Positions 15,448 through 60,100 of a stretch of 64,000 nt of DNA are shown here, piece by piece. The translations under genes and the position numbers were made by a program. The notes below the pieces were generated by a model that had not been told where the DNA came from, ran no database searches, and worked only from the letters and a program-made list of their open reading frames with translations. The stretch spans positions 434,001 through 498,000 of the forward strand of contig LSRY02000051.1 of NCBI GenBank assembly GCA_001643675.2, given 5' to 3'. The stretch is from Monocercomonoides exilis PA203. Its lineage: Eukaryota; Protista; Preaxostyla. Position 1 is the stretch's first letter, and each line of letters begins with the position of its first letter.

Positions 15448-16326
15448 TTAAAAAACATACAGTTTCCATAAAAGTCTTTTCCAAAAGGACTTTTCATTAT
15501 TCATCCATTCTGGAGGTTTTGATCTAACATAAAGTCTCCAATAATCTGCCATTATCCCTCCTTTCTTATCAGTTACTGAAATGTCATGCCTCATCCATAA
15601 TGGTGGTTCTGTTTGAACAAATTGAATCCAAAACATGGCCATTGTTGTTCCATCATTATCGCCAAGCTTAATATCATGTCTCATCCACTCTGGGGGTTCT
15701 GCTTTGACATTAACAATCCATATCATAGCCATTGTCAATCCTTTGTTATTAGAAAATGTATTACAATGTCTCATCCATTTTGGGGGGGCTGTTTTAACTT
15801 CAAGAATCCAAAGCATCGCCATTGTCCATCCATTATTGTTGCCAAGAGCAATATGATGCCTCAAAGATATTGGAGGTTCTATTTTCACATGTACAATCCA
15901 GTACATGGCCATTGTCAATCCATTTTTATCACCAAGTGTTAAATCATGCATCATCCATTCAGGTGGTTCTGTTTTGACATACATTATCCAATACATTGCC
16001 ATTGTTCTTCCATGCCTGTCTTTTTGTGCAATGCAGTACCTCATCCATTGCGGTGGCTCTGTTTGAACAAATTGAATCCACAGCATGGCCAGCGTTCTAC
16101 CATTATTGTTGCATAAAGTTATGTCATGTCTCATCCATTCAGGTGGTTCTGTTTTGACATAAATTATCCAGTACATGGCCATTGTTCTTCCGTCTTTATC
16201 AGATAGTGTGCTGCTGTGCCTCATCCATTCAGGCGGTTCAGCTTCATTCTCCATGATAAAATGCATGGCCTCTGTCATTCCATTTTCCACATCAAATGGA
16301 TTTATAGCATTAACTGTATTTCCCAT
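15448..16326 (-). CDS. 292-aa intronless tandem-repeat protein: 8 full plus 2 partial 30-aa repeats (EPPEWMRHxxxLxD/NxxGxTMAMxWIxxVK), distantly ankyrin-like
   Basis: Clear 90-nt periodicity, ATG start MGNTVN, TAA stop. The DxxGxT.AM segment recalls the ankyrin hairpin/helix start. Confidence 0.85.
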   Translation of the reverse strand: MGNTVNAINPFDVENGMTEAMHFIMENEAEPPEWMRHSSTLSDKDGRTMAMYWIIYVKTEPPEWMRHDITLCNNNGRTLAMLWIQFVQTEPPQWMRYCIAQKDRHGRTMAMYWIMYVKTEPPEWMMHDLTLGDKNGLTMAMYWIVHVKIEPPISLRHHIALGNNNGWTMAMLWILEVKTAPPKWMRHCNTFSNNKGLTMAMIWIVNVKAEPPEWMRHDIKLGDNDGTTMAMFWIQFVQTEPPLWMRHDISVTDKKGGIMADYWRLYVRSKPPEWMNNEKSFWKRLLWKLYVF

Positions 16327-16971: not shown

Positions 16972-18920
16972 TCATCGAGAAATTCCACTGGAGGTGATAG
17001 TGGGGGAGTTTGTTCCATTTCCAGTGAAAACGGTGTCAACCGCGTTGAAAGGGGGTGTTTGAGTGGGAACAAATGTTGAGGTAAGGAGAGAGGGAGGCAT
17101 CTTGGAGGAGGGAAATGAAGTCGTTGAGGGCATACTCGATGGTGGCGCATGGGGTCTGTTGGGGTCTGCCACAGGCATCAGCATCAGTTCCATTGTTGGC
17201 AACGATTTTGTTCTGGGCGATGAGGGGGAGCCAGCCATTATACACAGGGTTATCATCTTGTCCATAATTATACACTCTTTTTGTTGGAGTTGTTGATCCA
17301 CAATTTTCAAATGGGGATTGAGTGATATCACTTCCGTAAAAGAACACATCGTTTCCTCTTCCATTAGAAGCGGTGTTTCCATCGAAGAAGCAGAAAGTGA
17401 TGAATTTCATTCCATTCATCCAGGAATATGGTGGAAGGAAACACATTGCACCACCTCCATAATTTGCGGATTCAGTCAATTTATTGTTTATAAATTGGCA
17501 ATCAACAATCAAAAACTGAGTTTGTTTGCTTTGTGGAGGCCAATTGAATGTGAGAGAACCAGCAGCATCACCACCTGAGTTTGAAATGCACTTGCATTTC
17601 GAAATCAAGAATTGAGCATTTGATGGCATTCCACCAATTCCAAAATACCAACCAGTTCCACACCAATCTGTTATTGAGCAATTTTCCACTCTGTTATCTT
17701 GGAATCCCCAAACAGAATTTGATTGTGGATAAGCTATGCAAGTGGCTCCTCCATGAGCAGCTGAGCAGCTTGTGAAATTGGATTTAGCTATGTTAACATT
17801 TAGTAGATATAAGCAACCTAACGCTCCGCCGTGATCACCACTTGAACAATTGTTGAATGAACACGATGTCATGGTGAGTTTTGCGTTTGTGCAGTTAATA
17901 TGAAGTGCACCTCCATGACTGCTTCCACTGTTTGAATTATTCCATTCGCACCATTCAAAGCGATGGCTGTTTTCATCAAATGAAGTCAGTCTACCTGGTG
18001 TATCTCGTTGAGATTCAGTTCCAACATGCACAACAGCAGCATTTAAAGAAGATCGTGTTTGGTGAAGAAAGGAAGTGTTAAAGGCGAGAGAAAAGTGGAT
18101 GGGCTGTTGAGTTTGGGGAGAATTGCACAATCAATGTGGTTGAGAGTGCGGAGGAAGACGGATGAGAAGATGGAGAGGGCTAAGAGAAGAGATAAAGAGG
18201 GGATTGAATTGATGTTGGTGTTGGTGGAAGAGAGAGAAGAGGAAGAGGTGGTTGAGATGAAAGGATTGAGTGAGTGTGACGGAATGGATGAAAGAGATGG
18301 AGGGGATTGAGGAGAGGAGATGTTGGAGAAGAGGGTGTTTGAGAGATGGAGGTTGAGGTGGATTTGGAGGTGGGGATGGGATCGTTGATGGATATGGAGA
18401 AGGGAAGGGGAAGAGGAAATCGAAAGGGAAGGGGTAGGGGAAGGAGAAGAAAAAGAAGAAGATGAGGATGAGGATGAGAAAGATGAAGGAGAAGGTGAAA
18501 GGGAAGGAGATGGAGAAGGGGAAGGGGAAGAAAAGGAAGAAGGAGAAAAAAGGAAAGGCTGGATGAGGGAGATGAAGGAGGAGAAAGAGGAGTGGGAGAT
18601 GGAGAAGGAGGCTGGGATTGGGGAGTGGGCATCTGAGAGGAGATTGTTTGGGGTGGAGAAGAGGGGGAAGGAGAGGATGGCTGGTTGGTGGGTGATGAGG
18701 GAGAAGTTTGTGAGGGCGAGGGAGGCATGGGCAGAGAGGAAGAGGTGGCAGTGGTTGTGGTGGTGGTTGTTGGCGAGGGAATGTGGGTGGATAATGCAAG
18801 TGGAGGAGCAGGTGGTGACAGCTGAGTGGCGTTGGGCAGCGAGGAATGCACAGCCACTGAGAGGTTCTTTTGTGAGATGGCTCACACACAACGAGGTGTT
18901 GATGATAGAAATACTTGTTT
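16972..18920 (-). pseudogene. Pmp-like surface protein, frameshifted (near 18087 and near 17088) and 3'-truncated
   Basis: ORFs 18043-18891, 17036-18130 and 16972-17090 join by single frameshifts. Motifs FEWCEW, HGGALHI, DHGGALG, YGGGAM, FDGNTA, CGRPQQTPCATIEYAL. No TM anchor or clean start. Confidence 0.8.
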
Positions 18921-19313
18921 GAATATTACAAAAATAACTATTAACTCTTTGTCAAACTCTTTTTAAGTAATTTTGAACAAATCATATGCATATCATTTCC
19001 ATGCACTGTGTTGAAACATTCTTTCCATATCTCATTATTATTCTCCGGTGGAATATTCCTTTGTTCAATCCAAAAATAATTTCCATTGCAATAACCACGT
19101 TTCATAAATATAATTGTTTCACTCATCTTTTATGTTGGATAAAGTGCAGTCATGGAAGAGTATTATGGTACATAATAAAAGCAAACGAATTCACTATGAT
19201 TCAATTGAAATTCTTCAATTAAACAAGAGTTTAAGTAAATATGGAAAAAGAAAGAAACATTAATTTTCAAAAAAGAAAAGATTCAGAAATTAATTTCACG
19301 AAAAGAGTTGTCT

Positions 19314-22300
19314 ATGCAACAACAGAAGTTTTCATTGGAAAAAACGAGTGAAAATCTTTTTTCTGTAGCCCAAAATAAAATAATTAAAAATTGAAATAGC
19401 TTATTTGTTGGCTAACTTTTTGTATATTGCAGCAAATGATTTGGGAATCAAGTATGTCAATAAACTTAGTATTTTCAATACATGAATTTATGAAAAATTT
19501 GAAATTTATGCATTTTCTTCACAAACAATAAAAATATTAATTTTTTGAATTTTAATAGTCCCAGAGAGTCCATCTTCCGTGAGATCATCATACACATTTA
19601 ATGAACAAGGATTTGCGCATGTTGCATTGTTGCCCCATGAACTTGAAACCATTATGATGCAACAGGAAGATAAATTAGCAGCAAATGTTCGTCTTGTTGA
19701 AATTGATCAAGAAAACAAATCTGTATGTTTTCTTTATTCTTTTTTTGACTTTTCATATTAAGTTTTGTGACATTTTTAATTGAAATATAAATGAAGCAAA
19801 TTACACAACTAATATTCGAAGCATCTCAACTTATTGATGAGCAAAAGACTAGACATCATCGCCATCAGATGATTGTCGAGGATCATAAAGGAATTCTCTT
19901 GAGATCAGAAGAAGAAAAAAACGGATTGCGCAATGAGCTTGAAAAAACCAAAAAAACCATTAAAGAAACAGAAGTGCATTTCATTTCAAGCGTCAGATCA
20001 ATGAAAGCTGACTTCTTTCGTCTGAAAGAAACAATTGAAAACAAAAACAAGAGAATATGTGAGCAAGAAGAAGTTATTAACAAACTAAAGGAAGAATCTC
20101 AAAAACAGCTTCAAACAAAAGAAGAACTTTTTCAAAATCACAAAAATCAACTTCAGCAATCATTTGAATCAGTTGCAGATCAGTTGCAAATTGCTCAACG
20201 AAGAATATCAGAAGGGGAAGAGATCAGGGTAGCAATGACAAAGAATCTTGAAAAGGAAAAAGAAGACAAACAAGAGTTAAAAAAATCAAACGAAGAATTA
20301 TCAGAAATAATTCGAAAGCAAAATGATGAAATTGCCATCTTAATTGAGCAAAAGGAAACAAATCAAGCAATTTTCAGCAAAGAAATTGAAGAAAAGAAGC
20401 AACTGAAGAAGGAAATACTGAATTCTCGGCTGAAAGAGGCAGAAGGGAAAGTGATGTGTGTCCGCTTGTACTCACTTGTCCAACGCTGGGTGCTGTTTCA
20501 CTTGGCTTTTGTGGAGGAAAAGGAAAAAGAGACAGCAGAGCACGCAGCAGAGGCGATGCTGAGGGAAGAAGCGCTTCTTGCGAAGGCGGTGCAGATCGTC
20601 CGCAGAGCAGAGGAGCAGATGAAAAAAGACGAAAATGGAAACGACGAAGAAGTTGGAAGAGTAAACGGAAAAGCTGATACAAAAACAAAAGAGAAAGGGA
20701 AAATGGCAAGACATTCAAAAAAGGAAAAAGAAGGAGGGAGAGAACAACAAGAGCACAACAACAACAACAACAATAATAATTATGTGAAGAATGGGAATAA
20801 TGTGAAGACGAATTGCAGCACTTCGTGGGGGGAGAAGATGTTGGAGGAGCTGATTTTCGACAAAGACGTGGAGGAGATCTTAATTTGCGAGAGAGAAGAG
20901 AAAAAGAAGAGAGAAAGGGGTTTGCTGAAAGAGCTGCAGTTGGCGTTTTGCGACGATGATGAAGAAGATAATGGAAACAATAAAGAAAATGAAGAAAATG
21001 AAGAGGAAGAAGAAGAAGAGGAGGAAGAAGCGAATGATGAAGAAGAACAAAATGACGGCTCTGAAAGTGCGAAAAGAGGAGGAAGCTCGCCTTGTCTTTC
21101 ATTTGAGCCAAAACAATTAAATGGCGAAATGCCTTTTTTCATCGATTTTATTAAAAAAAGCAGAATGCCAAGTTCATCTTTGTCACTTCTTTCGCAAAAA
21201 GACAGAGAAAACCTGGAAGATGAAGAACAAGCGGACAACAACCAAACAAAAAAGAAAGGCTTTTATGAGAACGAACAAAATAGCGATCAAAACACAGATC
21301 CAGCAATTGTCACAGACGAAGATTTCACTCAGGCCGAGAAGGAGATGATAGAAGAGAAATACAAACAAATTGTGGAGAAAATCGAGTTGGACGAAGGAAG
21401 CTCGCTTCTTTCTTTGCTTTCGCTCCGAATGAACGGCTTGGCGAAGGAAAGAGAGAAAATTGGAGAGATTGATTCAAATAGAGGAATGGCAGAGAACGAA
21501 GATGCTCATGAAACAACAACAACAACAGCAAGTGAGGTGGACAGTCAGAACATGTTTGGAAAATCAACAAAAGAGAAGAAAGCGAAGCAAAGAAAAGAGC
21601 GAAAACAAAGAATTGACTCAGAGATGGATGAATCCAAAGAGAACAACGATGGCATTTCACGATATGAAAGAAGCGAATACGAAGAGGAAGAGCAAGAGGA
21701 AGGTGATGATGAAGACAGCGAAGAGGCAGAAGAAGCAGAAGAAAGCAGAAATGACAACAAGAAAGCAGCCAAAGAAGAAAAAGACAAAATCGTTGAGGAT
21801 GTGGCAGTTGTCTGCAAATGGAGTGGAATTAATGTCAGCAAAAAACAGGCAGAGCGAATGCTTTTGGATGCGCTGAGTAAATCCAACTCTGAATATCCAG
21901 AAGAAGAGAATGATGGCAAACACATCAGAGCAAACAAGAGAAGAAATACAAACAAAAAAACGAAAGAAGACGGGGCTTATGAAACAGAAAGTGATTTTGA
22001 TGAAGAACTTGAGCCATTCGATGAAGAGGGATCGGAAGAGGATGAAGACAATGATGATGATGAAAAAGAAAGGAAAGGAAACACATTGATAATAAAAGCG
22101 AAAAAACTAAGACAAAAATCTAATTCAACACACTCAAGTTCAAAGGGCAACGACGAAGTCACTGCCAAAATCAGTCGGAGCACATTTGAAGCAGCAAAAG
22201 CGTCGATCATTTTGATGGGCCGTTCAACAGAGGCGCTTGCTGCATCCAGCAGAAAGCACTACAACTTCAATGGAAGGCGCTCTTCTTCTTCTCTTCCGCC

Positions 22301-32953: not shown

Positions 32954-34678
32954 ATGATCCATTTCATTGCATTCGTATTTGTATTGAGGCTGAATGCGGT
33001 TGAAGTACAAGCAGAAAGTGTGGAGATGACCACTCTTTGGGCTTCAGACAGAGAGGATGGAATTGGCTGTTTGACAAAGGCAGTGAATTCATCGATGAGA
33101 GTTGTGCATGCCAAGCTGATTGGTGTGCAAAAAGGTTCGATCGGAGAGTTTGTGGAGGGATCTGAAGTGATCCTACAGGACTGCGTGATTGAAGCTACGA
33201 ACAATGAAAAGTCACCATTTTTGCTTGCTGGATCTTCTTTGAATGCAAATGGCATTGAACTCATTGCACAGAAGCATGGCTCTGTTGCGTGCTTTTGCGA
33301 GAATAAAGGTGGGAATGAGGAACTATTCCTGAGGAATTCGAGGTTCGATAATCTCGTGTGTATGGGGAAAAGTTCATTCCTTCCTATTCAGGGGAAGGGA
33401 ATGTCTGTTGTGAATTGCGAATTCAATAATGCTACTAAGCAAAATGGATTTAAAGGATTTGTTCAGGCTCCTGGATGTTTGGAAACTCAGTTAAGTGGAT
33501 CAAAATTTTTTAATTGCTGGAACCTGTTTTATGGTGGAATCATGGGAGGAATGAATGTGCATGAATTTGCTTCTAGAAATTGCAGTTTTTGTCAATGCAA
33601 GCACAACGTGCAATTAAGGTCAGGAGAAAATCCTTTCCCACCCACATACGATGGAGAGTCGTTTGATAGCCAAACATTCTCATATACTAAGACAATCGAT
33701 CGATGGGCTTCAGCTAATTTTACACATTGTGCGTTTGTTTCGTGCAGAGGACAAGTAGGAGGGGGTTTAAATATTTTTATGAGCAATGCAGAGGTTATTT
33801 CTTGCACTTTTGAAAGCTGTTCAGCTGAATCTGGTGCTGGTGCACTGTGTTCAATTACGGAAGGTCACAAAGTGACTTTGAAGAATAGCAAATTCGTTAA
33901 GTGCTCAACTACAGGCATTGAAGGCGATAGTGATTCGGCTGGATATACTTCTGGTGGTGCTATTTCTATTTATGGTAGTTGTTATTTATCTGGACTGACC
34001 GGAGAGGAGTGTATTGCTGGTGATGGAGGATTTATTGAGGCGTCATTATCTTCGGATGTGACGTGGGAAGGACTTACAGTTAAGGGGTGCAAGACTTTTG
34101 TTGGAAATGGTTGGAACATGGGTGGTGCCATGTACTTTTCTCGTATAAGTTCGTTGACAATCAAGGAGTCATTGTTCCAGAATTGCGAGGCTGGATTTAG
34201 TGGAGGTGCGTTGGCTTTTTATGAAGTGAAAAAAGCATCTGATCTTCACGTCCTGAACTGCAAGTTTATAGAAAATAAGGCTATTAAAAACCTTGAATAT
34301 TTTGATAAAATGAACTCAGAATTAAAAGAGGAAGATCAATTAAAAATAACGAAGGAAATGTGTGTGAGCGATATATTTATTTTCGAGAACGAAACCGAAG
34401 GAAAATTTACGAAAGACAATTTTGCTGGAACGACTTCATCGAGCAGGAAGCCACGAACATACAGCCGTTCACAAGGGAAATTTGACAATTTGATGAAAGG
34501 AATCCTATCAACAGGCGCAATTGTTGGTATTGTAGTTGGAAGCGTGGCCGGTGTGATTATTATCGTTGTTGCGATAATAATCATTGTGTGTGTTGTGAGA
34601 AAAAAGAAAGCAAAGAAGGAGGGTAGCAACAAAGAAATGGTATCTGTTGATGTATCAACACAAGAGGAAACTTCATAA
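32954..34678 (+). CDS. 574-aa Pmp-like beta-helix type I membrane (surface) protein
   Basis: Hydrophobic N-terminus; repeated GGA(I/L/M) plus FxxC/FxxN motifs (GGAISIY, GGAMYF, GGALAF, FIEN); C-terminal TM GAIVGIVVGSVAGVIIIVVAIIIIVCVV followed by RKKKAKK. Intronless. Confidence 0.85.
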   Translation: MIHFIAFVFVLRLNAVEVQAESVEMTTLWASDREDGIGCLTKAVNSSMRVVHAKLIGVQKGSIGEFVEGSEVILQDCVIEATNNEKSPFLLAGSSLNANGIELIAQKHGSVACFCENKGGNEELFLRNSRFDNLVCMGKSSFLPIQGKGMSVVNCEFNNATKQNGFKGFVQAPGCLETQLSGSKFFNCWNLFYGGIMGGMNVHEFASRNCSFCQCKHNVQLRSGENPFPPTYDGESFDSQTFSYTKTIDRWASANFTHCAFVSCRGQVGGGLNIFMSNAEVISCTFESCSAESGAGALCSITEGHKVTLKNSKFVKCSTTGIEGDSDSAGYTSGGAISIYGSCYLSGLTGEECIAGDGGFIEASLSSDVTWEGLTVKGCKTFVGNGWNMGGAMYFSRISSLTIKESLFQNCEAGFSGGALAFYEVKKASDLHVLNCKFIENKAIKNLEYFDKMNSELKEEDQLKITKEMCVSDIFIFENETEGKFTKDNFAGTTSSSRKPRTYSRSQGKFDNLMKGILSTGAIVGIVVGSVAGVIIIVVAIIIIVCVVRKKKAKKEGSNKEMVSVDVSTQEETS

Positions 34679-37939: not shown

Positions 37940-40715
37940 TTCTTCTTCTATTTCTTTGCAAAGCAGCATCAATGCAACAAAAGAAACAGCCTGCGATGAA
38001 GAGCAACCATCAGCACACGATGCAACTCATTCAAAGACATCTGCATGTTATTCGTCATATTCTTTTCCTGCTTCTCCTCCTTCTCAAGACAGCCTCCTCA
38101 CTCCTTCAACGCGAGCTGAACAGTTTTATGCCTCGTCTAATGCTCTTCCAACGTCTTCAATTGCATCCAGCGAATCGACAAGCTCTTTGGAAGCACCCCA
38201 ACCGTCCTATTCGCCCAACCAGGCGCCGATTCTTGAGACAGACCGGCTGCTGTGTGTTATCAGAGAGCAGAGCGATAAGCAGAAGGAGATTGAAAAGATG
38301 CTGGCGGTTCTGAAGGAGAAGTTTGTGAAGGCGAACGAGAATTGGGAAAGGGAGTGTGAGTGGATGAGGAAGAAGTATGTTGAGTTGGAGAGGGAAAAGA
38401 ATGAAGTGGAAAGAGAAAGAAAGGAGAGAAGCGAAAAAGTGAAGGCAGAAGAAGAGCAGAAGAGGAAAGAAGAAGAGGAGCGAGAAGAGGAAATAAAGAA
38501 TTTGAGTCAAGAGAATGAAGAACTGAAGAAGATATTGGAAGATTTAACGAAAGATAAAGAGCAAATAAACGAAGAGAGCAACAGAATGAAATCAGAATTG
38601 AACAAGAAACTTGAAGAAGAAAGAAGGAAATATGACGAAATGATGGAAGAGAACGAAGGTTTGATGGAGAAGAGAAGAGAAGAAGAAGAGAGACGGACAG
38701 AAGAAGAGAGGAAAAGAATAGAGATGGAAGAAGAAATCAGCAAGATGAGAGAGGAAATGACAACATTATATAAAGAAAGAGATCGAGAAAAGCATGAAAT
38801 GCTATCGAAAATCGAAGAATACGAAAAACTTGATCAAATGAAGAATGAAAAGAAGACAGAGGCTGAAAGAGAAATTGAAAGCATCAAAAAAGAAAAAGAA
38901 GAGCTGAAAGAAAGAATCACACAAATTGAGAAAGAAAACAACGAAAAAGAGCAAAAAGCGAAAGAAGAGAAAGTTTCAATGGAGAAGAAAATGGATGCTA
39001 TGGAGAAGCAACAGAAGGAGGCAAATGAAAATATGAACAGATTACTAAAAGAAATTGCTGAACTTGAAAACGAGAAAAAGAAAATGCAGACAGAAAACGA
39101 AGTGTTTAAAGAAGAAAAAGAGAAAATGGAGAAAGAAAGCAAAGATTTGAAGATTCAGTTGGAAGAGCAAATGGAAAAGGAACAACAGGACAAAAGCCAA
39201 GAAATATCAGAAGAGAACGCGAAATTGAAGGAGGAAGCTGCAAAATGCTCAGAAGACATCAAAAAAATGATTGAGGAGGTTCAGCTGCAGCAGGTGCAGA
39301 ACGAGAAACTGAGAGAAGAAGCAATGAGAATGAGCTTATTGAAAGAAGAACTGGCTTGTAAAGAGAATGAATTGGAAAAGCAAAAGAAAGAAATCGAAGA
39401 AGAGAGAAGATTGAGAGAGAAAGAAGAGAAAGAAAGAGAAGAAGAGATTGAGCATTTGAAAGAGATGAATGAGCAAGCTAAACAAAGCAACGATGTTTTG
39501 CAAAAGCAGAATGAAGATTGGAAGTTGAAGTGGGAAGAGTTGAAGGAAAAATTGTATGAAGCAGAAAACGAAGTTAAGCGCAAAGAAGAGATCATCAGTC
39601 AAATGGAAGCGAATGATGAGGGAAGAAAAGACAAAGATTCCACTGAAGATGGACAAGCGAAGGATGAAGAGAAGACAGATGCACAGACACAAGAAGGGTG
39701 TGGTGCAGCTGAGTCTGATTCACACACACCTTCCAAGTCTCGCTCTTCTCAGACATCAACAGCATTGAATTCAACAGCGCTTCAAACAACACCTCACCAG
39801 TCTGCAACAGAAACTTCATCTGCTTTTTCAACAAATCCTTTAAGTTCAGTTTCTCCACGCATCCACAATTCAGACAAGGACTCCTCACTTATGCACACAA
39901 ATGTCCTTTCGACTCCTCAGAAACAAGCACAGCTGGCAGACACTGCATCGACTGAAGCGACTCCAACAGCTGCTATTTTGGCTGCTGAATTTGCAGCATC
40001 AGCTTCTCCTTTTGCCTCTTTCTCACCAACTTCGTTGTCTTTGGCTAAATCGTCTTCTCTCTTTCCTTTTTCATCTGACCTCCTTTCACAGCCACATCAC
40101 TTCCATTCTCTTTCCACGTCATTTTCTCGTCGTTCTGCTGAGGCCTCTCCTTCTGTCCCTTCTTCTCTTGTCTCGTCGCTTTCTTCGCCTTCGCCTTCTC
40201 CTTCTTCCTCTTCTTCCACAAGCTCTTCTTTCTCTCTGTTTTCGCTTCTTTCTTCTCTTTCACTGCTTTCCTACCAAAACGCGTCACTTCAATTGGAAAG
40301 CGACCGAATGCTCATTCAATTTCTTGCTGCGCTGAAAGCAGCAGAAAATCAGGAAGAGTGTCTGAAGCAGCTGTCTGAAGCAGTTGCCGAGCTCATATTG
40401 AGAAGCGATGTTGAGCTGGTGACTTTATCAAAGGAGTATGCAAGCGGAAAAGAGAGTTCAAAAATTGATGCCAAAGAAGAGAGAAAAGAAGGAAAAGAGG
40501 GTGCAGCAAAAGAAGAGAAAGAAAGAAAAGAATTAAAGCAAAACGAAAAAGAGACACACAAACCAAAAGCAGAAAGCAAAAGTGGAAAAGAAATTAAGAA
40601 AGAAGCAAGACCCGGAATTGGAAAAATGAACGAAAAATCAAAAAACAAAGTTGTGAAACCAAAGGAAGTTTCCAACATAAAAAGAAAATCGGGAACAAAA
40701 TCTGTGCAGAATTAA
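35340..40715 (+). CDS. Large protein with WD40/beta-propeller-like N-terminus, Ser-rich linker and long coiled coil (5' exon structure approximate)
   Basis: 1554-aa ORF 36051-40715 with IWGCGDQGRVFQWD and IWIGGIQGNVW. Upstream exon near 35619-35824 has VWISDDNGWILIY. E/K-rich heptads run about 38250-39620. Confidence 0.7.
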
Positions 40716-45087: not shown

Positions 45088-48000
45088 TTACTGTGGTCCA
45101 TTTGTTTCTTCTGAAAAGCAATTATCATCTTCAACTGATTCTATGTCTTCAACCTTTTTCTGTAAAGATTTTGCTTTCTTTCCTTTTCTAAGTTTTCCTT
45201 TTTCCCTCTTTTTCCCTCTTTTTTTTCCTCTTTTTTTTTGAGAAGGCGATGGGCTGCTATCAATTACTAGATGCATGATTTCATCAGATATGACAGGGAA
45301 CGGGGAATCGATGATTGAGATAACTGAGTCTGCAGGCATGCTCTTGTCAAAACCATCGACCTGTTGGATAGTCTCAATACAAAAATTTTCTGGCTCGATA
45401 GGTATGGAAATATCATTGATTCCAATTCTTTGTGGACCTTGGCTCTGCTTCTTTTCCAGTAATGTTGATGAAATATCATTCGTCTCTTTTGTTATTTTGC
45501 TATCTTCTCTTTTCATTTCTTCCGCTTCCTCTAATTTCACTTTCTCTGAATCTATTTCTATAAATGGCATTTTTGATATGCTCTGTTTCTTTCTATAAAG
45601 AACAGCTAATATAATAAACGCAATTATCATGATTACGATAATTACAACACAAGCAATAAATGCAATTATGCTCCATTCAAGTTTCCCTTTTTTTGGTGAT
45701 TCGGTTTCATTGTTGGATATTTCGCTGTTTGCTTCTGTGCTATTCTGCAAAATGAAAGATATTGTTTCCGAAGGAGATTCCGCATTCCCAAATAAAACGC
45801 AAACGCTTGCCTCAGTCGTCTTCTCGTCCCAACCCAGACTTGAGAGTTGTACTGTCAATCGAATATTCTTTTCGTCAATCGAATATTCTTTTTCAAGAAT
45901 TTCTTTAACAATGTGATGGCCATCACTCCTGTTTAACGTGAACTGTAACGATAAATTGCATGGAATAAGAAGCTTCCCTTTCAGCTCAATTTGCGCATCT
46001 TGCCCCTGACTTGAGGCCGTAACAGATTCAAGATGTGGTGTAAATAAGGGAGAAGCTCTCTTTCCAGCTATTCCGCCAAGTGTGCATCCCTCATTCAATA
46101 TCCATAGCGATGAATCGTCTTTTAATCCATCACCATCTTTTAAGCTGACCAACTCTAGCTCCGCTGCATTTTTGCATATTATATTTCTTCGTAGAGATTC
46201 ATACTTCTCAATCTTAGGATTATTGTCCGAATAAATTCCCATTTCGATTCTCACTTTTCCTCCCACGACTGATAATCCTCCATTCTTTCCATTTATAAAT
46301 GCAGTTTCCTTCATAAAAACTTCGCTTTTCTTCAATTCCATCATTGATCCATTCCATCCACAAATATCTTCAATTGAAGAAAATTGTTCAGGATTATTAT
46401 TGATGGATGCATTTGATTGGAGTTCTGAAAAAGAATTCAATTCGTTCAAAGACTTATCGCAAAGCAAGCGAGAATTAGAATTAGAAAAAAGACCTGCATT
46501 AAAAGTGCTAAAAGAAATTGATGTCACAGATTTGCTTATTCCAATAAATGGAGCGTTGCAATTATCCTCAAAGCAATTAAATGAGCAGTTGCCAATGTCA
46601 ATAGTGGGACATTTTTCAAATATATCAGCTTGTGGATTGCCAATCAATGGAAGATCATCAAATTGTGAATAAATAAGCGGAAAACATTGACTTACGCTTT
46701 TTAATTTTGCTAATGATTCGACAGAAAGTCCACGAGATAAATTTGAAAATGACGAATGAGATAAAGAGAAGTTTATTTTTTCATCAGAATTGTATCTTTC
46801 ATTTGGATCCGCTATTGAATAAAAAGAGCTTTCAATATCATTTATGATTGTGTCATCCACAGTCATTGAGGAAATTGATATATTCCCACAATTTTGATTC
46901 AAAACAATTGGGCTAACTGCAAAAGCCAATCCATTCATTCGAAATTCGCTTATCGTTAAATCACCTCCTTCAATTAGTAATATGTTCATAGCAATTTGGA
47001 AAGGATCATTCGTGGATCTTTTCAAAAGTGCATTAGCAGTTTGATCCGCTTCTTCATATGTTAATTCAATTGACGTGAGATGCGCGTGTCCTTCTGTAGA
47101 TTTGATAACTGCACCACAAGCCAATTCTCTCGTAATGTGCAGAGAAGCATTTTGCAATGCAAAGAATTTTGAATTACACAGCAATCCTGTGGTAATTTCT
47201 ATACTTTCATTTCCTTTTAAAACCAAAGTTATTTGCTTAGTTCCAGGAGATTGAGAAGAATCTTCATTATGAGGTTGAATAGTTGTTCCAGATACGTCAT
47301 TAGAGCTGGTGATATAGCATTTCCCATCGATTTGAATATATTTGTCATCACCTTCAAGACGACTTAAAGCGTCAGAAAAGCTTTTACAAGGGATGCTTGT
47401 AGTACCGCAAAGTTTTGAGTCAATTCCATCATCTGCAATAACCACAACTGACGATTTTTGCTCCCACAAATCAAATAGGTTGACATCTTTTGAATCCAAA
47501 GCATCAGCCCCGTAAAGAGCATTCTTCTGATCATATCCATCAAAAAACGAGAAGTCGAACCAGCTCATTACAGCGCCTGTGCTCAGTCGTGTTGCATACA
47601 CAAAAACATCTCTTCCACATTTCGCACTATTGAATTTAAACGTTGGTGAGGACAATAAATAACTTCCAACAAACGGAGGCAGAAGATTCAACAGCAAAGC
47701 TCCTCCTCGTCCATTTGACAAGTTTGCGCTTGAAGATGAGAAAGCTGAATTGTTTATCAGCAACTTCATTTTGTTGTCCAATGCCAAATACATGGAGCCT
47801 CCTTGGCTTTCTGAACCATCAACATTAACGTTGCTGAATCTAACTTGGCTAAAGTTTAATGACTGATCTTGTTGGTTATCATTTAGCTTTTTCATTGCGA
47901 TGCAACCTCCATGAGTCCCACTGCTTTTAATTTGCGTAAAATTCGAATAAGATACAGAACCTGCTGAAATGTAATTCATTGCAATCAATGGGCAACTCAA

Positions 48001-51000
48001 ATTCACATTGTTGAAGTTACATCTATTCACAGTAAAGCTTCTGATATTAACAACTTGAAGAAAACCATCACAACCATTTGCATTTGACTTTGAAATGTTT
48101 GAATAACTCAATGAAATGCGAATAGTTTCATATTTTTGCTGATTTTCGTACCCAGCAATCATAAAGCTTGCATCCTGATAATTCAAATCGCTTAATGAAA
48201 CATAACTAAATGAAACATTTCCATTTATCATATTCAGAAATGGATAATTCAACGATTCTCTTGTCGCATTGTTTGATATTGAACAACTACCATATTCCAA
48301 ATTTCCTCCATTAACTGTTGTGAAACTATTTATCGAACCGTGTCTCTTTAACAAAATCCTTAATGTTTTAAATGATATCTTTGTAATAATCTCAAATGCC
48401 GAATTTCCTTGGAAAGCTGTACCATCTTTTGTAGTCAATGTGCTTTTTGATTTATCTGTTCCTTCAATAGAAATTTGGTAATCTTGACAATTAAGTGATA
48501 TTCTCTTTTCCACACTTGACTTGTTGAGAATTTTACAAATTCTTTTTGAATAGCTTGTTTTAGCTCTCTCAATTGCTTGACTTATTGTAGCGCATGGATA
48601 TTTTTGATATCCACAAATATAATTATCTATTCCATTATCATCTATACTGCTGTTACTAAATGTTCCCAACGTAAATGCAAATAATGGAACAGCATCCACA
48701 TCTGGATCATTTATTAATTCACTTCCAAGAAATTCATCAATGTTTGCTCCGCTAGCAAGAAAGTTAAACGTTGTTGATTTCACAATCTCACTTAAATCTT
48801 TTGCATATAGAAACATCACTGATCCGAATATGGCTTTGTTATCAATGCAATTATTCATATCGCTAACTCTCATATCCATTTTCATCGGAAGATTTTCCAA
48901 ATTATGAACATACATTCCACCGCCTTTACTTCCATCTTTCAAAAGTCGGCATTTCTTAAAGATCAAATTGCTAAATAATAACTTATAATTATCAGCATTT
49001 CCAAATGAATTATAACAACTTTCCTCTTCGGAAATGCGACAAAAAAATCCACCTCCCACTAATACTATATTCCCTTCATCAAAATCGATAGCTTCACAAT
49101 TTTCAAACAGGCAGTCTTCGATTATTAATTGTTCGAATTCTTCTTTCATATTGATAACATTATTGTTAATATTTACAAATTTTTTCATTAATTTCATATT
49201 TGTTTTTCTAGTATTTAAAATAAACTTTAAACCTCCTCCTCCTGCTTCCTCATAACTGCCGCCACTAAATCCCGTGCATTTAACCACAAGCCCCGTAAAC
49301 TTGCTGTTCGTTACACTTCCTCTGACACATCCCTCAATCTCCACCCCTCGCCCACTCACAAAACTAGAATCACCATCTTCCGTAGCTCCACTAATCGCTG
49401 CTCCCGAAATAATGAAACTATCCGCCTTCGCCACACGCACAAGACTCCCGCAACCTTCCTCAGAAACACTCTTCGTAATAGTAACCTCCTCCATATTTAC
49501 ACTTACACCTTCTCCCGCTTCCACTTTCACCAGATACGCCTTCCCTCCATTCCCTCCATTCACTTTGCAATCGTTCATCCACACATCCACCAAATTAACT
49601 TTATTTGCAACTTCTCCTCCTCCTTCTCCTCCGCCCTCGGCAACTTGCGAGCTCACCCCATACTCATATTCAATCATGCTCTTCGAAAGCTTCATTGCCT
49701 TAACCGTCACATCACTCATGCTCAGATTACTTCCCCCTTCATAGTGGATCACTCTCCATCCAATCGTCTCTTCGCTAATTTCTGCCCCATCAAACTCAAC
49801 ATGCTCCACACTCAGGCTCACTCCTGCCCCCTCACTCCACACAACACTGCTGCTCTTATTCCCTGCTTTATTCAATGAAAAATAGACATTCTGTATAACC
49901 AAATTAACATGGCTCGTAATCGCCCCCTTCGCATCGCCTTCCTCTCCTTCATTCCTTCCGCTGACTCCTGGTTTGCTCTCAATATCAATCATCACTTTCA
50001 TTTTTTCTGCACTCCCATCTTCACTTCCTGCTGCCCCATCAATAATAACTTTCCCAGGCAGAGCACCATTCGCTCCATTTCCTGCCAAAAGCTCAATCGG
50101 CGCCTTAATAGCATAATTCGCCCCAGAAAGAACAATCTTCGCCTCATCACTGCTTACATCCCACCCAGCATTCTCATATGCATAATCAATCTTCACACAC
50201 GGCAGATACTTCCTCCCGCATCCCAGAACATCTTCCCCGCCCACCTCAATCTCCTTTTCCTTTTTCCCCATCATCACATATGCCCCCTCGCTTTCATCCC
50301 AATCAACCAAATATCTCAGCAGGCTCTCAGTCTCCTCTCTTATTGTTTTCTCACCTTCCCCTTCTGTATCTTCTCTAAAATACCCTCCTTCCATCTCGTG
50401 CCGCCCTTTCGCACTTTCCGTATCATATTCAAAATCAAATCTGATTTTTTCCACAATCTCCGAAGCATTAGCGACAGGATATCTAACAAACAAATTCCTG
50501 CCGTGCAACGCATAACACTCATCTCTTTCACCGACGCCAAACAGATTCTTCTTTCCTGCCATCGGACCTTCCGTGTCTCCTTCCTCGTTCTCTTTTGTAA
50601 CACCCCCCAAATAAAATTTCATATTTGTATTCTGTACATCCAAGAAGATCCCTCCTCCTCGACCCTCAGTGTTATTGGCATCCTCTGCCATTCCCGTCTC
50701 ATCCTTCTTTTCCCCCGCCCAGCACGACTTAAACATGCACCCCTTAATCTCAATCCTGCCTCCTTCACCCGCACCATCATCTTTTTTCCCAAGCACACAC
50801 CACACCCCTCCTCCCACTAAAAGCGCTTTTTCCTTCCCTGCTCCAATAACTTTGCATCTTTCAAACTGGCATCCTTCTATAGCCAGCTGTGCTTCTTCCT
50901 CTTCCGTTCTAATATCGCTTGCATCCCCATTTCCGCTTTTCTCCATCGACCGCCCCGTCACTCCCGTCGCCTTCACAGTCGCCTTCAGCCCCCCGCCTCC

Positions 51001-53277
51001 CGCTTCCTCATAACTGCCGCCACTAAATCCCGTGCATTTAACCACAAGCCCCGTAAACTTGCTGTTCGTTACACTTCCTCTGACACATCCCTCAATCTCC
51101 ACCCCTCGCCCACTCACAAAACTAGAATCACCATCTTCCGTAGCTCCACTAATCGCTGCTCCCGAAATAATGAAACTATCCGCCTTCGCCACACGCACAA
51201 GGCTGCTGTCAGTTTCTGTGCAATAACAATTTGCTATATGAATATGTGATATATCAATTTCCATCCTTTCGCTTCCAATATTATTTTCGATATTTATGAG
51301 ATATTTCTTATATGTGCAATTTATTAATGATAATGAAAATGCTATCTCTTCATTTTCATTGATGTTTGTTATTAATAAAGAAGATGGGCTTTCAGATAAA
51401 AATGTTAAAGTTCCTGATATCATGAATAAGAATGATTTTATGAAGCAATTTTGGACATTCACTTGATGGAAGAAAAGCTTTCCAGCTTTGAGTGTTATTA
51501 TCGTTAAGTGTGAGGCATCTGTGTCTGTTTCTTGAGTAAACAAGCACTGAGAAAATGATAAGGTGTAATTATTTGAGTTGTTCACCTCGGATGTTATAAA
51601 AGAAATATCACCTGTTTGATTAGATATAAAGGATATTTCAAGCCTTGTAAAGGAGCACTGCGTAGTGACTTCAATTAGAGCTTGTTCAGTCGATGTAATT
51701 CTTATATTCATTTTCGAATTGGCATTATCGTTGGGGTTTCCACATACATTAAAAGGTAGATCTGTCAAAATTAAGAGTTCATTGAGTACAAATTCATTCA
51801 TGAGTATAAGTTCTCGCTCGCATATTCCTAAAAAAGTGTTGCTTAATGCATACATAATTGATCCACAAGGGTTGTATTGCGTCCCACAATTTGGATTATC
51901 GTTTGTAATATTTGAATTGAAATAAAAAACATTGCCTTCTGGTGTAAGGTAATCAATTATTGAGATGATTGTATTATCATCGGGTGAAGCCTGATATCTG
52001 GTTTTGTTGTCGTTTTCTGACATGTCAAAAGCGAAATATTCTGTGGTGGCTACCAAATTATACAAAGAAGATTTTAAAAATATATTCATTCCATTTGTCG
52101 CACTGCAGGAATTTTCTCCTATTCCAAATGTGAGATTCTTAAATACAAAATCCAATGATCTTAGTTGAAGATTCAAGTATATTGCTCCACCTTTTGTGCT
52201 CTGTTCAGATGAGTTTGCATTGCATGATTCGAAAGTTGAAGAATTTAACTCAAGGCGGACTCCACGCATTAAATCAATATATAATGCGCCTCCTTTTAAC
52301 CCATTCTCTACCAAGGTGCAATTACGAAAAGTGCTATTTGAAATGCTTAGAAAAGGATCAGTCGGTTTCCCTCCCGTGAATTTGATGCAACTTCCACAAT
52401 TTCCAGTATTTCCAAGAGTTTCCTCTTTAAAATTCAAAATAACAGAAGAAAAATTGGATTTAGAAATAGTGAACTGATTAGCCATTTCTATGCTGAAAAG
52501 CGATGAATGAATGTTTAAAAATTCGAAGTTTGATTCTGTTATAGTGGCTATTGAAGAAGATTTCACATTAATAATCCCTTTCGAACTTGTTAAAATAGAT
52601 GAACAAGGAGTGTTCGAGCCAAATTCAGAGCAATTATCATTTGGTCTTATGGACAAATTTTCGAATTTGCAATTCGCATTCTCCCCTGAAATATCTAAAA
52701 GAGAATTTCCAAATGTCTCTGGCAAAATAATTTCAACCCCAATCATTTCCAGTGAAGCATTTTCCATTTTAATAAATGCTGTTTCTTCGTTGCTAAATGT
52801 TTGAAGGAAAATTTCCAAATAACTCATCATTGTTTCAGAATGGAACTCAAGTGAAGGAAAAGTTGAATCAGAGCCGGTGACATCAATGCTCGCATTGCTT
52901 TCTTCAGATAAAGTGATTGCGCAATTGAAATTTTTTGATTCTGTTATTGTTGTTTTTCCGTTGATTTTGACAAAAAATGGTCCGGTTTTATTGAAAATAG
53001 TTGTCAAGCTGCAACATGGAGAATTCTCTCTACAGTCGTTCGTATCTTCTCCGTCATTTTCGTTAACATAATAGAGTTCATCAGCGTTCTTAGACGTGTG
53101 ACTTTTTAAGGTGAAACAGAAAAAACATCACAATAAAAAAAATCACAATTTATGCAATGAAGAAAGAAAAATTGCAAAATTAATTTCAAACATTTTTGGC
53201 TCAAAACTGTATGTTTCTCCAATTTGCGATAAAATAAAGAAATAACAGAAGCAAACACACAGCAGGCAAAAACCCAT
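45088..53277 (-). CDS. Giant (about 2699 aa) Pmp-like modular beta-helix type I membrane protein; exons 53277-53192 and 53101-45088
   Basis: Signal-peptide exon MGFCLLCVCFCYFFILSQIGETYS is joined in phase via a 90-nt intron. Recurrent GGA(I/L)Y and CGxxxxPCxxI motifs; TM WSIIAFIACVVIIVIMIIAFIILAVLY followed by RKK. Confidence 0.9.
49244..51201. repeat. Identical 200-bp direct repeats (49244-49443 and 51002-51201), 1758 bp apart, inside the giant surface gene
   Basis: Base-by-base identical by eye from GCTTCCTCATAACTG to CACACGCACAAG; both encode LVRVAKADSFIISG...GGSYEEA. Confidence 0.95.
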
Positions 53278-57100: not shown

Positions 57101-60100
57101 TTTCTTTGAGATCGAAGCAACTTTTGTGGAATCCTTCGTGTTCTTCAAAACATTCTCCGTCTTCATCATCTTCCACTTTGTTCTTGGCGATATCCATCAG
57201 AACTAAAGCAGCAGAAAGTGAAGCTGAAAACACAGGAGATGATTCAACCACACGAACAAGAACCGAAATGAAATGCTGGCTGAGGAAGACTGGATGGTTT
57301 GCTGAAAAATATGATATAATTTGAAGAATGTAATAATTAAATAGAGAAAGAGGGTGAAAGAGAAATAAAATAACAGGGAATATATTTCAAAAAATCCGAA
57401 AAAATAGTACGAACACAAAACAGATACAAAGATGACCAATTAAAGAATATTCAATTTTATAAATAATCATTCAATATATCCGCATTCATTCAAAACAAAG
57501 CAAAACAAAAACAAATACAAAAACAAATTGTTATTAAATCTCTCTGTTTTTCTCTCTCTTCCATACATTTCCCATCAGCCAGGGACAGTATTGCACCGCA
57601 AGCTCTGTTCGCTGTCTCCTCGTTCTGCGACATCAGCATGAACTTCAGCACAGACAAGACATACCTCGACCTCTCGTTCAGCATCATCGCCTTGTGCAAT
57701 GAGCACAAAATGCACACGACTGTTTCCGTGTGCAGCGGCGAGCGGTTCAGCTGAAAGACGTTCAGCATCAGCTCAAAGGGGAATGTGCACATCGAACACG
57801 GACAGCCAGACACAGTCAGAGATGGATGCAGCGAGCAATAGCGGCAGGTGCATGCAGATGCTGCTCCATTCAATGATCCATTCAATGATCCATTTATTGT
57901 CCCATTTGAGCTGTCTGGTCCAAACAGTCCTGGTTTGCACACCTGGCAGCTGCAAGTCTCCATAAACGTGCTCAGCACCTCGTTCCACTTTCCTCTCTCC
58001 GCCCGCTTTGCCCCCATTTCTGTGAGAATCTCGAGAATTTGCAGGACGAAGAGGGGAATATCGGACACATCGCGATACAGCAGGACAGACAATGTGGATG
58101 TGATGAGCTCTTTTTCGAATGGGAATTGAACTACAACAGAAGAAGAAGAAGAAGAAGAAGAGGAGGAGGAGGAGGAGGAGGAGGGAGTTGATGAAATGTC
58201 TGTTTGAAATGAAGAGGAGGATGAATGTGAAACGAAGGAAGAGGAAGATGAAGCGGAAGAAGGAGATGGAGGAGAAGATGAAGAAGACGAAGAAATGAAA
58301 GATCTCAGCAGATTCAGCAGAAAACAAAGGAGAATATCGACACAATCTCTGTGTGTGTGAAATGGAAGATTCTGATAAAGTGGAGAAGAAGAAGAAGAAA
58401 GATTTGAAGAATCAGAAGAAAGTGAAGAAGAAGAAGAAGAAGATGATGATGATGATGATTGCTTTTCAGATCCAAGAGATTCCAAGTTGAATGAGCAGTT
58501 TCTAACCAAAGGGAACTGCTGAAAGGAAAGAACGGGGTGAAGACTGCGAAGTTGAGGAGTGACAATACAAAAGGGAGAGTTAATCATTGAATTGCGCTGC
58601 TTGGACTTGGCAAAGTCTCTTGAATTGGGAGGAAGAGGAGAAAGAGAGGAAGAAGAGGAGGAGGAAAAAGAGGAGGAAGAAGAGGAGGAAGAAGGAGAAA
58701 ATGATGATGATTGAGACGAGCCAAAGGGAAAGGAGGGAGAAGGAGAAGAAGAGCTTGAAGTGAGTGAAGTGGAGAAGCGATATGAAGGAGAAGAGGAAGA
58801 CGGTGTGGTTGCAGATGGCTGTGATGAAGTGACCGAAGAAGGGAAATGCGAAGAGGATGAACCGACTGAGGCACGTGAAGAAGGATGAGAAGAGGAAATT
58901 GAATTGACTGGGAGAGAAAAACGAGATGGGCGTGAAGAAGAAGAAGAAGAAATGGAAGAAGAAGAGGAAGAGGAGGAAGATGATGATGAAAGAGAAGAAG
59001 CTGAAGAAGCAAAAGCAGAAGGAGAAGAAGAAGGAAACGTGCTGAATGAGCTCTCATCTTGTTCGTCGAAGCATTTTGAGAGGAGATGCACAGCTGAAAT
59101 GACAAGTTTGATGAGTTTTGGGTGTGACATGACAGAATCCAACACATTTGACAGCTGAAGAGGAAGGTTGGCGAGGGTGATGCAGGCTTCGGTGAGGAGA
59201 GGGACGGAAAGGGGGTTGATTGATGATATGTGTGAAGAAGAGGAGGAAGGAAATGCGAAAGATGAAGTGTTTGATTGTGTTGGTGATTGTGGGGGAGAAG
59301 AAGAAGAAGAAGACGACGAAGATAGCAACGAAGGTGAAGAATGTGTTGGGGAAAGAGGAGTTGGATGAGATGACTGAAGTGATGAAGAAAAGAGAGAATG
59401 AGAAGGCGAAGTTGCAGAAGAAGAGGAAGAAGATGAAGATGAAGACAAGGATAAGGGAGATGGGACAAGAGGAGAGCCATGAAGAGATAACTTGGACTTT
59501 TGTTTTGAGGAGCCTGCTAAAGGAAGAGGGGAAGAAGAGGAAGAAGAAGATGATGATAACGATTGAGCTGTTAATGATTCATCCATTGGCACACTGTCTG
59601 TCTCAAACAATGCCATCAAGTGTGATGAAATGATGCTGCAGAGTCTGTCCAGCAAGCCCAGTGAAATCAGATGAGTGATAGCAAAATTGAGAGAAGAGAG
59701 AGAAAAAGAAGAGGAAAGCAGAAAATCCTGAATGCCCCGCAAGGCAGCGATGTATGCCTCGAAGGACGAGAGAGAGGAGGAAAGAGGATTTGGGCTGAGG
59801 TTGGAAGAAAGCGATGGGTTGGGTTGTTATTCAAAAGAGTGAAGAAAAATAGCAGGTGTGGAGGGGAAAATGCATAAGTTAAATATGATAGTTGGAAGGG
59901 GAAAAGAAGATAAGGCAAGTTAGAAAATATTAAAAATTAATAAATAAAGTGAAATTGTTGGCATACTCATTTTCTCTCAATTTGCCGAACCAGTTGTTAA
60001 CGTCGATGTTTTCCTTTTGTGAGCTTTCTTTCTTTTCTGCTTCTTCGCGTGCTTCATCACTTTTTGAGGGGATTTTTGAGAGTTGAATGGAAGAAGGTCT

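Follow-up and report, generated by a model that had tools for sequence, protein, structure and literature searches.

Surface proteins built from long, domain-sized repeats that are identical at the DNA level are well known in bacteria, examples being streptococcal alpha C/Rib, staphylococcal SasG/Aap, and the Marinomonas ice-binding adhesin RII; the number of copies sets the reach of these proteins from the surface, and varies between strains. In human apolipoprotein(a), the kringle IV-2 array is a tandem series of near-identical copies of a whole folded domain, and copy number sets the size of the protein. Recombination between the repeats of FLO1 reportedly alters the length of the protein. 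Fungal adhesin genes (FLO, ALS, EPA) contain intragenic tandem repeats, and ectopic recombination between paralogues gives rise to mosaic genes (PMC3512402). Here, we describe a 1758-bp module that lies in frame within a giant surface-protein gene, MONOS_9739, of Monocercomonoides exilis PA203. The gene is located in a window of 64,000 nt, the whole of the stretch analysed, at positions 434,001 to 498,000 of contig LSRY02000051.1 (hereafter C49; coordinates without a contig name are positions in the window). Comparison with a sister gene, MONOS_10584 on contig C47, makes it likely that the module is a unit that can be amplified in tandem and in frame within genes for giant single-pass receptors of a beta-helix type, its copies being uniform within each gene.

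The locus resembles the fungal adhesin genes in having in-frame coding tandem repeats in a surface protein, and in having mosaic paralogues. However, fungal units are short (tens to ~135 nt), form Ser/Thr-rich linkers, and belong to proteins anchored by glycosylphosphatidylinositol or to the wall, whereas the M. exilis unit is a whole structured module of 586–600 residues in a single-pass membrane protein, with a codon style of its own. Bacterial units are likewise smaller, at 79–128 residues with immunoglobulin-like folds; the units of this eukaryote are about five times longer. Apolipoprotein(a) differs in that its units include introns (5.5 kb genomic) and its product is secreted, and we know of no compositional step reported for the kringle IV-2 array. 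As a means of varying length, the proposed mechanism would be ordinary for adhesin-type genes. The gene pair suggests a route to very different ectodomain lengths in the largest gene family of a well-known 'mitochondrion-less' eukaryote, with open frames of between 2.6 and about 8.3 thousand residues, in two genes whose identity is otherwise 88–99%, that would be reached by gain or loss of whole ~600-residue modules.

A repeat search of the window identified a 222-nt repeat in two copies of 97% identity (49225–49446 and 50983–51204), with starts 1758 nt apart. Alignment of the copies showed that 200 consecutive bases are identical (49244–49443 and 51002–51201), in agreement with the original prediction, made from the letters of the window alone, of two identical 200-bp direct repeats spaced by a multiple of three (1758 = 586 × 3). 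Both copies are in the frame of a minus-strand open reading frame (ORF) at 45088–53007. The remaining 19 nt of the 222-nt repeat contain six differing positions, all of them silent, such that GGGGLK is encoded by both copies; the codons of this edge are A/T-ending in the downstream copy and G/C-ending in the upstream copy. We read the downstream edge (49225–49243), with the same residues in A/T-ending codons, as the probable end of a homogenised tract. Given this geometry, 586 codons would be lost or gained in frame if the 200-nt pieces recombined. To this extent the suggestion of an excisable or amplifiable in-frame cassette holds; there is no evidence of programmed switching. The window gene carries 1.13 units, i.e. 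most likely a single full unit. Tandem Repeats Finder is blind to periods of 1.8 kb. Whole-protein self-BLAST masks internal repeats, and we therefore compared the protein with itself segment by segment. The features of the window gene, and the position of its sister, are as follows:

45088–53007, minus strand: giant surface-protein ORF, 2639 codons, stop-free
53143–53277, minus strand: candidate upstream exon, conserved in the C47 gene and starting like a signal peptide (MGFCLLCVCFCYFFILS...); kept separate from the main ORF
51205–53007, minus strand: N-terminal ectodomain flank, AT-rich, 601 codons; 93% nucleotide identity overall to the C47 gene, with blocks at 97–99%
49225–51204, minus strand: G-rich block, equal to the entire repeat structure (1.13 units, 660 codons)
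49447–51204, minus strand: one full unit, 1758 nt or 586 codons; 85% nucleotide and 74% amino acid identity to the C47 units
50983–51204, minus strand: upstream repeat, the first 222 nt (74 codons) of the unit; identical core at 51002–51201
49225–49446, minus strand: downstream repeat, the terminal partial unit, 74 codons encoding the same protein as the upstream repeat; 49244–49443 identical to the upstream repeat
47425–49224, minus strand: ectodomain segment directly after the array, AT-rich; a right-handed parallel beta-helix is predicted for the ~370 residues at its C-terminal end
45589–45681, minus strand: single transmembrane helix (ORF residues 2443–2473), followed by a Lys-rich tail of ~165 residues without a kinase domain
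C47:1077387–1102358: sister gene MONOS_10584, with the same layout as the window gene

We searched the M. exilis PA203 assembly (82,301,135 bases, 101 contigs) for the module. A DNA search recovered only the query itself. By contrast, a protein search found the module at two places, the window on C49 and C47:1079310–1097741, and at no others. The C47 array (82–85% identity) surfaced only in the protein search; had we relied on BLASTN, we would have wrongly concluded that no donor exists. Using BLASTN and MAFFT, we resolved the C47 array into ten units of 1798–1804 bp (1079310–1097315), followed by a partial unit of 233 bp. Among units 2–10, the only differences are 1–2-nt indels, almost all of them located in runs of G, together with the shifts in alignment that these produce; unit 1 is 98.4% identical to the remaining units. 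Such indels interrupt the C47 frame about a dozen times, and are probably due to miscalled homopolymers in the Nanopore consensus. The array has a GC content of ~0.5 and a GC skew of +0.6. Read through, MONOS_10584 would encode roughly 8,300 residues, with a tail that ends in a half-kinase-like segment. The EukProt model of this gene is 2150 aa long and has one unit only, indicating that the array was collapsed in earlier short-read-based data. The junctions between flank and unit, between unit and unit, and between partial unit and flank are homologous in the two genes; therefore, the layout of n units followed by the first ~230 nt of another is ancestral.

Copies of the unit are more alike within a gene than between genes. 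The C47 units are 99.3–100% alike, as compared to 85% nucleotide and 74% protein identity between them and the window unit. Of the 200 sites in the repeated piece of the window, 18 differ from the C47 interior copies and 26 from C47 unit 1. The two window copies of this piece, identical at 200/200 sites, share all 18 differences from the C47 interior copies. Because both repeat positions exist in both genes, this implies that the window gene underwent homogenisation at least once after the split. The C47 terminal partial copy is identical to the C47 interior copies, and its G-style tract extends ~12 nt further than that of the window gene. Identity in the window therefore stops, on the 3' side, where a conversion or crossover tract ended, and not at the original duplication joint. 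The units have the character of intragenic tandem repeats in being head-to-tail, in frame and near-identical, with more similarity within than between genes. Between the two paralogues, their number differs (1 in the window gene and about 10 in C47). A tandem array homogenised by concerted evolution had been offered as one reading of the module, and it is right for the gene pair, in which the only close paralogue has ten copies and the two window repeats have the same 18 differences.

Identity between the two genes outside the units is patchy:

Window 52740–51841, 48852–48673, and 48129–47590: 97–99% identity to the C47 gene
Window 47589–47230: 96% identity
Rest of the flanks: 87–95% identity
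DNA adjoining the array on either side: 73–79% identity
Module interior: 72–94% identity
Last ~550 codons: essentially unrelated between the two genes

The C47 tail matches the window protein only over a 64-residue stretch, at 38% identity, that lies before the membrane helix in both; there was no match between the C47 tail and the window cytoplasmic tail. The simplest reading is that the flanks have been refreshed by conversion between the loci, and that each array would have been homogenised only inside its own gene. The near-identical flank blocks are not G-rich; therefore, recently copied DNA does not in general carry the G style.

These observations are consistent with an ancestral gene consisting of an N-terminal flank, n units, the first ~230 nt of a further unit, and a C-terminal flank, with n having diverged in the two surviving copies to one in the window gene and about ten in MONOS_10584. 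Unequal homologous recombination, together with gene conversion between units, would shift the copy number by whole modules of 586–600 residues. The same exchange would homogenise the copies within a gene and leave the two genes free to diverge, i.e. concerted evolution. Under this model, one of the identical 200-nt pieces would open the single full unit and the other would be the terminal partial unit after homogenisation; their identity may reflect recent conversion, or recent contraction from a longer uniform array. The likely consequence would be variation in ectodomain length or in the number of binding modules.

Several points weigh against this interpretation. Uniformity within the window gene is seen over only 200 nt, there being a single full unit, and a change of copy number at this locus is something we infer rather than see. 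Polishing with short reads by Pilon can equalise near-identical repeats, such that 100% identity is an upper bound both in the window and in C47. The C47 array is longer than the read N50, so the copy number of ten may be inexact. The signal peptide and 5' exon of the window gene are candidates only. Lastly, AlphaFold2 applied to the module itself, with a two-row alignment, gave a predicted local distance difference test score (pLDDT) of 28. 

The module differs sharply in composition from the rest of its ORF. GC content is 0.45–0.54 inside the module and 0.27–0.34 in the adjoining flanks, and GC at third codon positions (GC3) is 0.45 inside as compared to 0.28–0.29 in the flanks, confirming the GC3 step. 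The G fraction of the coding strand is 0.39–0.42 inside and 0.13–0.20 in the flanks, corresponding to a GC skew of about -0.6 on the plus strand. Maximum-likelihood change points in G lie at 51199 (support 51195–51223) and 49232 (support 49222–49236), which are the ends of the repeat structure; the limits of the G-rich block are within about 20 nt of the repeat ends. Change-point analysis of the C47 array revealed equally sharp G steps at its ends (1079298 and 1097541). The enrichment is found at all three codon positions, coding-strand G being 0.50/0.29/0.36 inside and 0.22–0.28/0.12–0.16/0.11–0.15 in the flanks. By contrast, C at third positions (C3) falls, to 0.09 inside the module from 0.13–0.18 in the flanks. 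Hence, the enclosed DNA is indeed richer in G+C, as had been noted, but only G is enriched on the coding strand. A-ending codons give way to G-ending ones in every synonymous family of the module, and C-ending codons become rarer in several families, as seen in the share of individual codons among the synonymous codons of each amino acid:

Glu GAG: 50% in the module, 20% in the flanks
Lys AAG: 56% in the module, 26% in the flanks
Thr ACG: 69% in the module, 14% in the flanks
Ala GCG: 43% in the module, 15% in the flanks
Val GTG: 50% in the module, 22% in the flanks
Gln CAG: 80% in the module, 29% in the flanks
Asp GAC: 3% in the module, 20% in the flanks
Tyr TAC: 0% in the module, 19% in the flanks
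Phe TTC: 16% in the module, 28% in the flanks
Ile ATC: 9% in the module, 16% in the flanks

The module protein is enriched in Gly, Glu, Val and Ala. For the other ORFs of the window, G at third positions is 0.09–0.32 and C3 is 0.10–0.27; on this spread, which exists genome-wide, the module is extreme in its G-richness and the flanks are near the bottom. The window unit and the C47 array differ at 245 sites, of which, read on the coding strand, 119 are A/G and 38 C/T; the G of the A/G sites is in C47 in 70 cases and in the window in 49, a weak trend. Motifs for G-quadruplexes in the module were not enriched over shuffled sequences, and we dropped an explanation specific to these structures. In 240 kb of C49 we found 26 G-skewed blocks, mostly Glu/Lys/Arg-rich low-complexity coding sequence, with a few in other giant genes of the family. 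There was no further long-period array among these 26 blocks, a sample that does not settle whether G-richness and arrays are linked. In the window itself, 18000–22000, 38000–40000, and 58000–60000 are purine-rich (G- and A-skewed) stretches of Glu/Lys-rich low-complexity coding sequence; they are a separate phenomenon, the module being of complex sequence.

The G-rich codon style belongs to the array DNA, with which it travels, and is older than the split of the two genes. It has two candidate origins, namely a bias that acts on array DNA, and the amplification of a block that already had the G style when it was inherited through a mosaic junction. For the second, the module would have been acquired by recombination from a G-styled member of the family, inheriting its composition, a scenario that we regard as unlikely. 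It accounts for boundaries that are sharp to within about 20 nt, and is in keeping with a mosaic family (patchy identity between the two genes, and unrelated tails), with the G-rich patches in other giant family genes on the same contig, and with the non-homogenised edge of C47 unit 1, which is already G-rich. However, the genome contains no donor, the best outside match having 28–34% identity, and a phmmer search against 1.84 billion representatives found nothing else. The first candidate is a strand-asymmetric process tied to the array, driving A>G and C>T on the non-template strand and thereby making the array DNA of M. exilis receptor genes G-rich; we put this forward tentatively, and consider it doubtful. 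Possible sources of such a bias are single-strand exposure in R-loops, or biased repair during recombination within the array. This idea fits the G steps, which fall exactly at the array ends in both genes, and the excess of A/G differences between the arrays; it does not fit the G-rich non-repeated patches elsewhere, or the non-enrichment of G-quadruplex motifs. The G-rich switch regions of immunoglobulin genes are an analogue for G-rich DNA that promotes recombination. If a bias of this kind did operate, modules undergoing amplification would be recognisable by their codon style, which in turn might favour recombination among them. A sharp, strand-asymmetric G style that is limited to the array offers a testable handle on mutation or repair bias in a little-studied lineage.

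In an alternative to an amplifiable unit, the window structure would date from an old partial duplication that became fixed, the locus having been static since then, and the identity of the repeats would be due to a one-off conversion or an artefact of polishing. One full unit gives unequal exchange little substrate, the layout is common to the paralogue and hence old, and Pilon polishing can homogenise repeats. Nonetheless, the 18 differences from the C47 interior that are shared by the two window repeats require at least one homogenisation after the genes separated, and the paralogue shows that the same unit amplifies. We therefore consider a static duplication improbable.

We judge it slightly less probable still that the window gene contains many identical units that assembly has reduced to 1.13, as in the original prediction of a collapsed array and a much longer protein. 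Identical repeats are the classic setting for collapse, the paralogue array shrank to one unit in the earlier short-read-based model, and the many homopolymer indels in the C47 array signal a poor consensus in such DNA. The assembly used here was built with Canu from Oxford Nanopore Technologies reads (101 contigs, ~82.3 Mbp, read N50 8.9 kb; PMC8767320) and polished with Nanopolish plus ten rounds of Pilon (PMC8767320). This same assembly laid out the ~18-kb array in C47, whereas the window structure is shorter than 2 kb, has unique AT-rich flanks, and can be spanned by ordinary reads. Moreover, reads entering a longer array from both sides would have led an overlap assembler to retain several units, and the frame of the window unit is intact.

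GC-biased gene conversion in a recombining array had been suggested as the cause of the compositional step. The step coincides with homogenised DNA in two genes, and GC3 rises from 0.28 to 0.45. However, GC-biased conversion is strand-symmetric, whereas the shift at synonymous sites is from A to G, with G alone rising, C3 falling, and C-ending Asp, Tyr, Phe and Ile codons becoming rarer; furthermore, no G-richness is seen in the flank blocks with 97–99% identity between the paralogues, a level that points to recent conversion. This explanation is very improbable. A dedicated cassette for antigenic variation (by excision or swapping with silent donors), or a mobile element with direct repeats, would also be an in-frame surface-protein segment bounded by identical direct repeats, but is extremely unlikely, given that DNA and protein searches of the genome revealed no silent donor copy or third locus, that there are no terminal inverted repeats and antisense ORFs have no family match, and that the 'direct repeats' are coding sequence, the start of a next unit, as in the ten-unit paralogue.

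The comparison of the two genes as amplifiable arrays also corrects their public models, in which MONOS_9739 is truncated and MONOS_10584 is given one unit instead of about ten. A word-index protein search matched the window gene at 100% protein identity to MONOS_9739, an 'uncharacterized protein' of M. exilis. The public NCBI model is 1728 aa long, spans only 51264–45091, and begins at an internal Met; it omits the 580-codon N-terminal ectodomain flank, and removes as introns in-frame AT-rich coding pieces just past the repeat. The start and splicing of this model are probably artefacts of the gene predictor, and we take the open frame at 45088–53007 as the better guide to the protein. Surface anchoring is suggested by one transmembrane helix (residues 2443–2473) and by relatives in the family that are giant proteins with kinase tails, the signal-peptide-like upstream exon being a candidate only. 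The predicted product is anchored in the membrane and belongs to a very large family of giant receptor-like proteins.

Segment-wise self-comparison showed that the ectodomain is a series of diverged segments, with mutual identities of 22–24% (E 1e-8 to 1e-11). The description of the flanks as diverged homologues of the module ends is borne out, at 33% identity, in the ~84 residues that follow the end repeat; beyond these, the relationship is the weak one of 22–24% between segments. The motif GG[AGS][ILVM] occurs seven times in the window protein, as compared to 0.37 times in shuffled sequences, with a pair in each ectodomain segment, including the module; F..[CN] occurs 22 times as compared to 14.6. 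We modelled the segment at 47425–49224 with AlphaFold using a ten-row family alignment. Residues ~225–595 of the model matched right-handed parallel beta-helices (Z 15–19 over 250–300 residues, root-mean-square deviation 3.5–4.8 Å), among them tailspikes, PL6 lyases and the adhesins PfbA, Fap2 and Vag8, with pLDDT of 74–91 only for residues 390–580; Foldseek alone gave no significant match for this model. A beta-helix fold for the module itself is suggested by its 22–24% identity, through the N-flank domain, to the modelled segment. We set aside a profile comparison of the module with the family alignment as circular, MONOS_10584, a carrier of the module, being one of the aligned sequences. 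A language-model atlas for the window protein leans to DUF1565, Chlam_PMP and Beta_helix clusters and to a Preaxostyla cluster, which we treat as a lead only. Pfam searches gave no match for the whole protein at E ≤ 0.1, nor for its four parts at a maximum E of 10, at which filters remove most matches above ~0.1; within these limits there was no match to the Chlam_PMP model (PF02415), whole or in parts. A Pkinase domain was absent from the window protein by Pfam search, and a PDB sequence search returned nothing. In a separate ORF of the window, of 574 codons (32954–34678), Pfam detected Beta_helix (PF13229, E 9e-7); this is the sole window ORF whose beta-helix Pfam detects.

Chlamydial Pmps are beta-helical surface proteins with GGA(I,L,V) and FxxN motifs (PMC10715098, PMC11166332), and Pmp-like proteins are described in Trichomonas vaginalis (bioRxiv 10.1101/454884). 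Possible points of likeness between the window protein and the Pmps are its seven GG[AGS][ILVM] motifs and the beta-helix model, which covers the sister domain of the module only. Unlike the Pmps, it has no Chlam_PMP match or autotransporter barrel, and has instead one transmembrane helix and a cytoplasmic tail. Tyrosine-kinase-like (TKL) kinases are the largest family of the M. exilis genome (PMC6759080), and overlap the genome's 'unclassified repeats' (PMC6759080, PMC8767320); the two M. exilis genome papers (PMC8767320, PMC6759080) do not describe the ectodomains or their tandem modules. The window ectodomain is homologous to that of kinase-bearing, receptor-like TKL members, whereas the window cytoplasmic tail has no kinase domain. 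All detectable named relatives of the ectodomain are M. exilis 'uncharacterized' proteins of 1800–4070 residues, in which Pfam finds kinase domains only.

Beyond the two genes, phmmer against the 1.84 billion representatives, Pfam, and the PDB sequence search returned nothing for the module, and the best match in the genome protein search had 28–34% identity. For the ectodomain family as a whole, first-look candidates numbered in the thousands; of scored matches there were at least 70, with identity no higher than 31% and open frames of 2,000–16,665 codons. Family members at C36:155657–186214 and C14:2333882 have open frames of 16,665 and 8,137 codons, respectively, and may hold further module arrays. 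On C49, two family genes of ~3,020 codons (504822–513698 and 604589–613449), 100 kb apart, share 93% identity across 8.9 kb; both contain a G-rich patch of 600 bp, in matching positions, with no tandem repeat. Also on C49 is a 13-kb inverted duplication (537405–550421 and 553891–566904) of 99.1% identity with a ~3.5-kb spacer, which contains a 1.8-kb G-skewed coding block with a GGGMMIDAL-type motif. Within the window, a minus-strand ORF at 15448–16326 contains a tandem repeat of 90 nt (30 aa) in ~8 copies of 66–72% identity.

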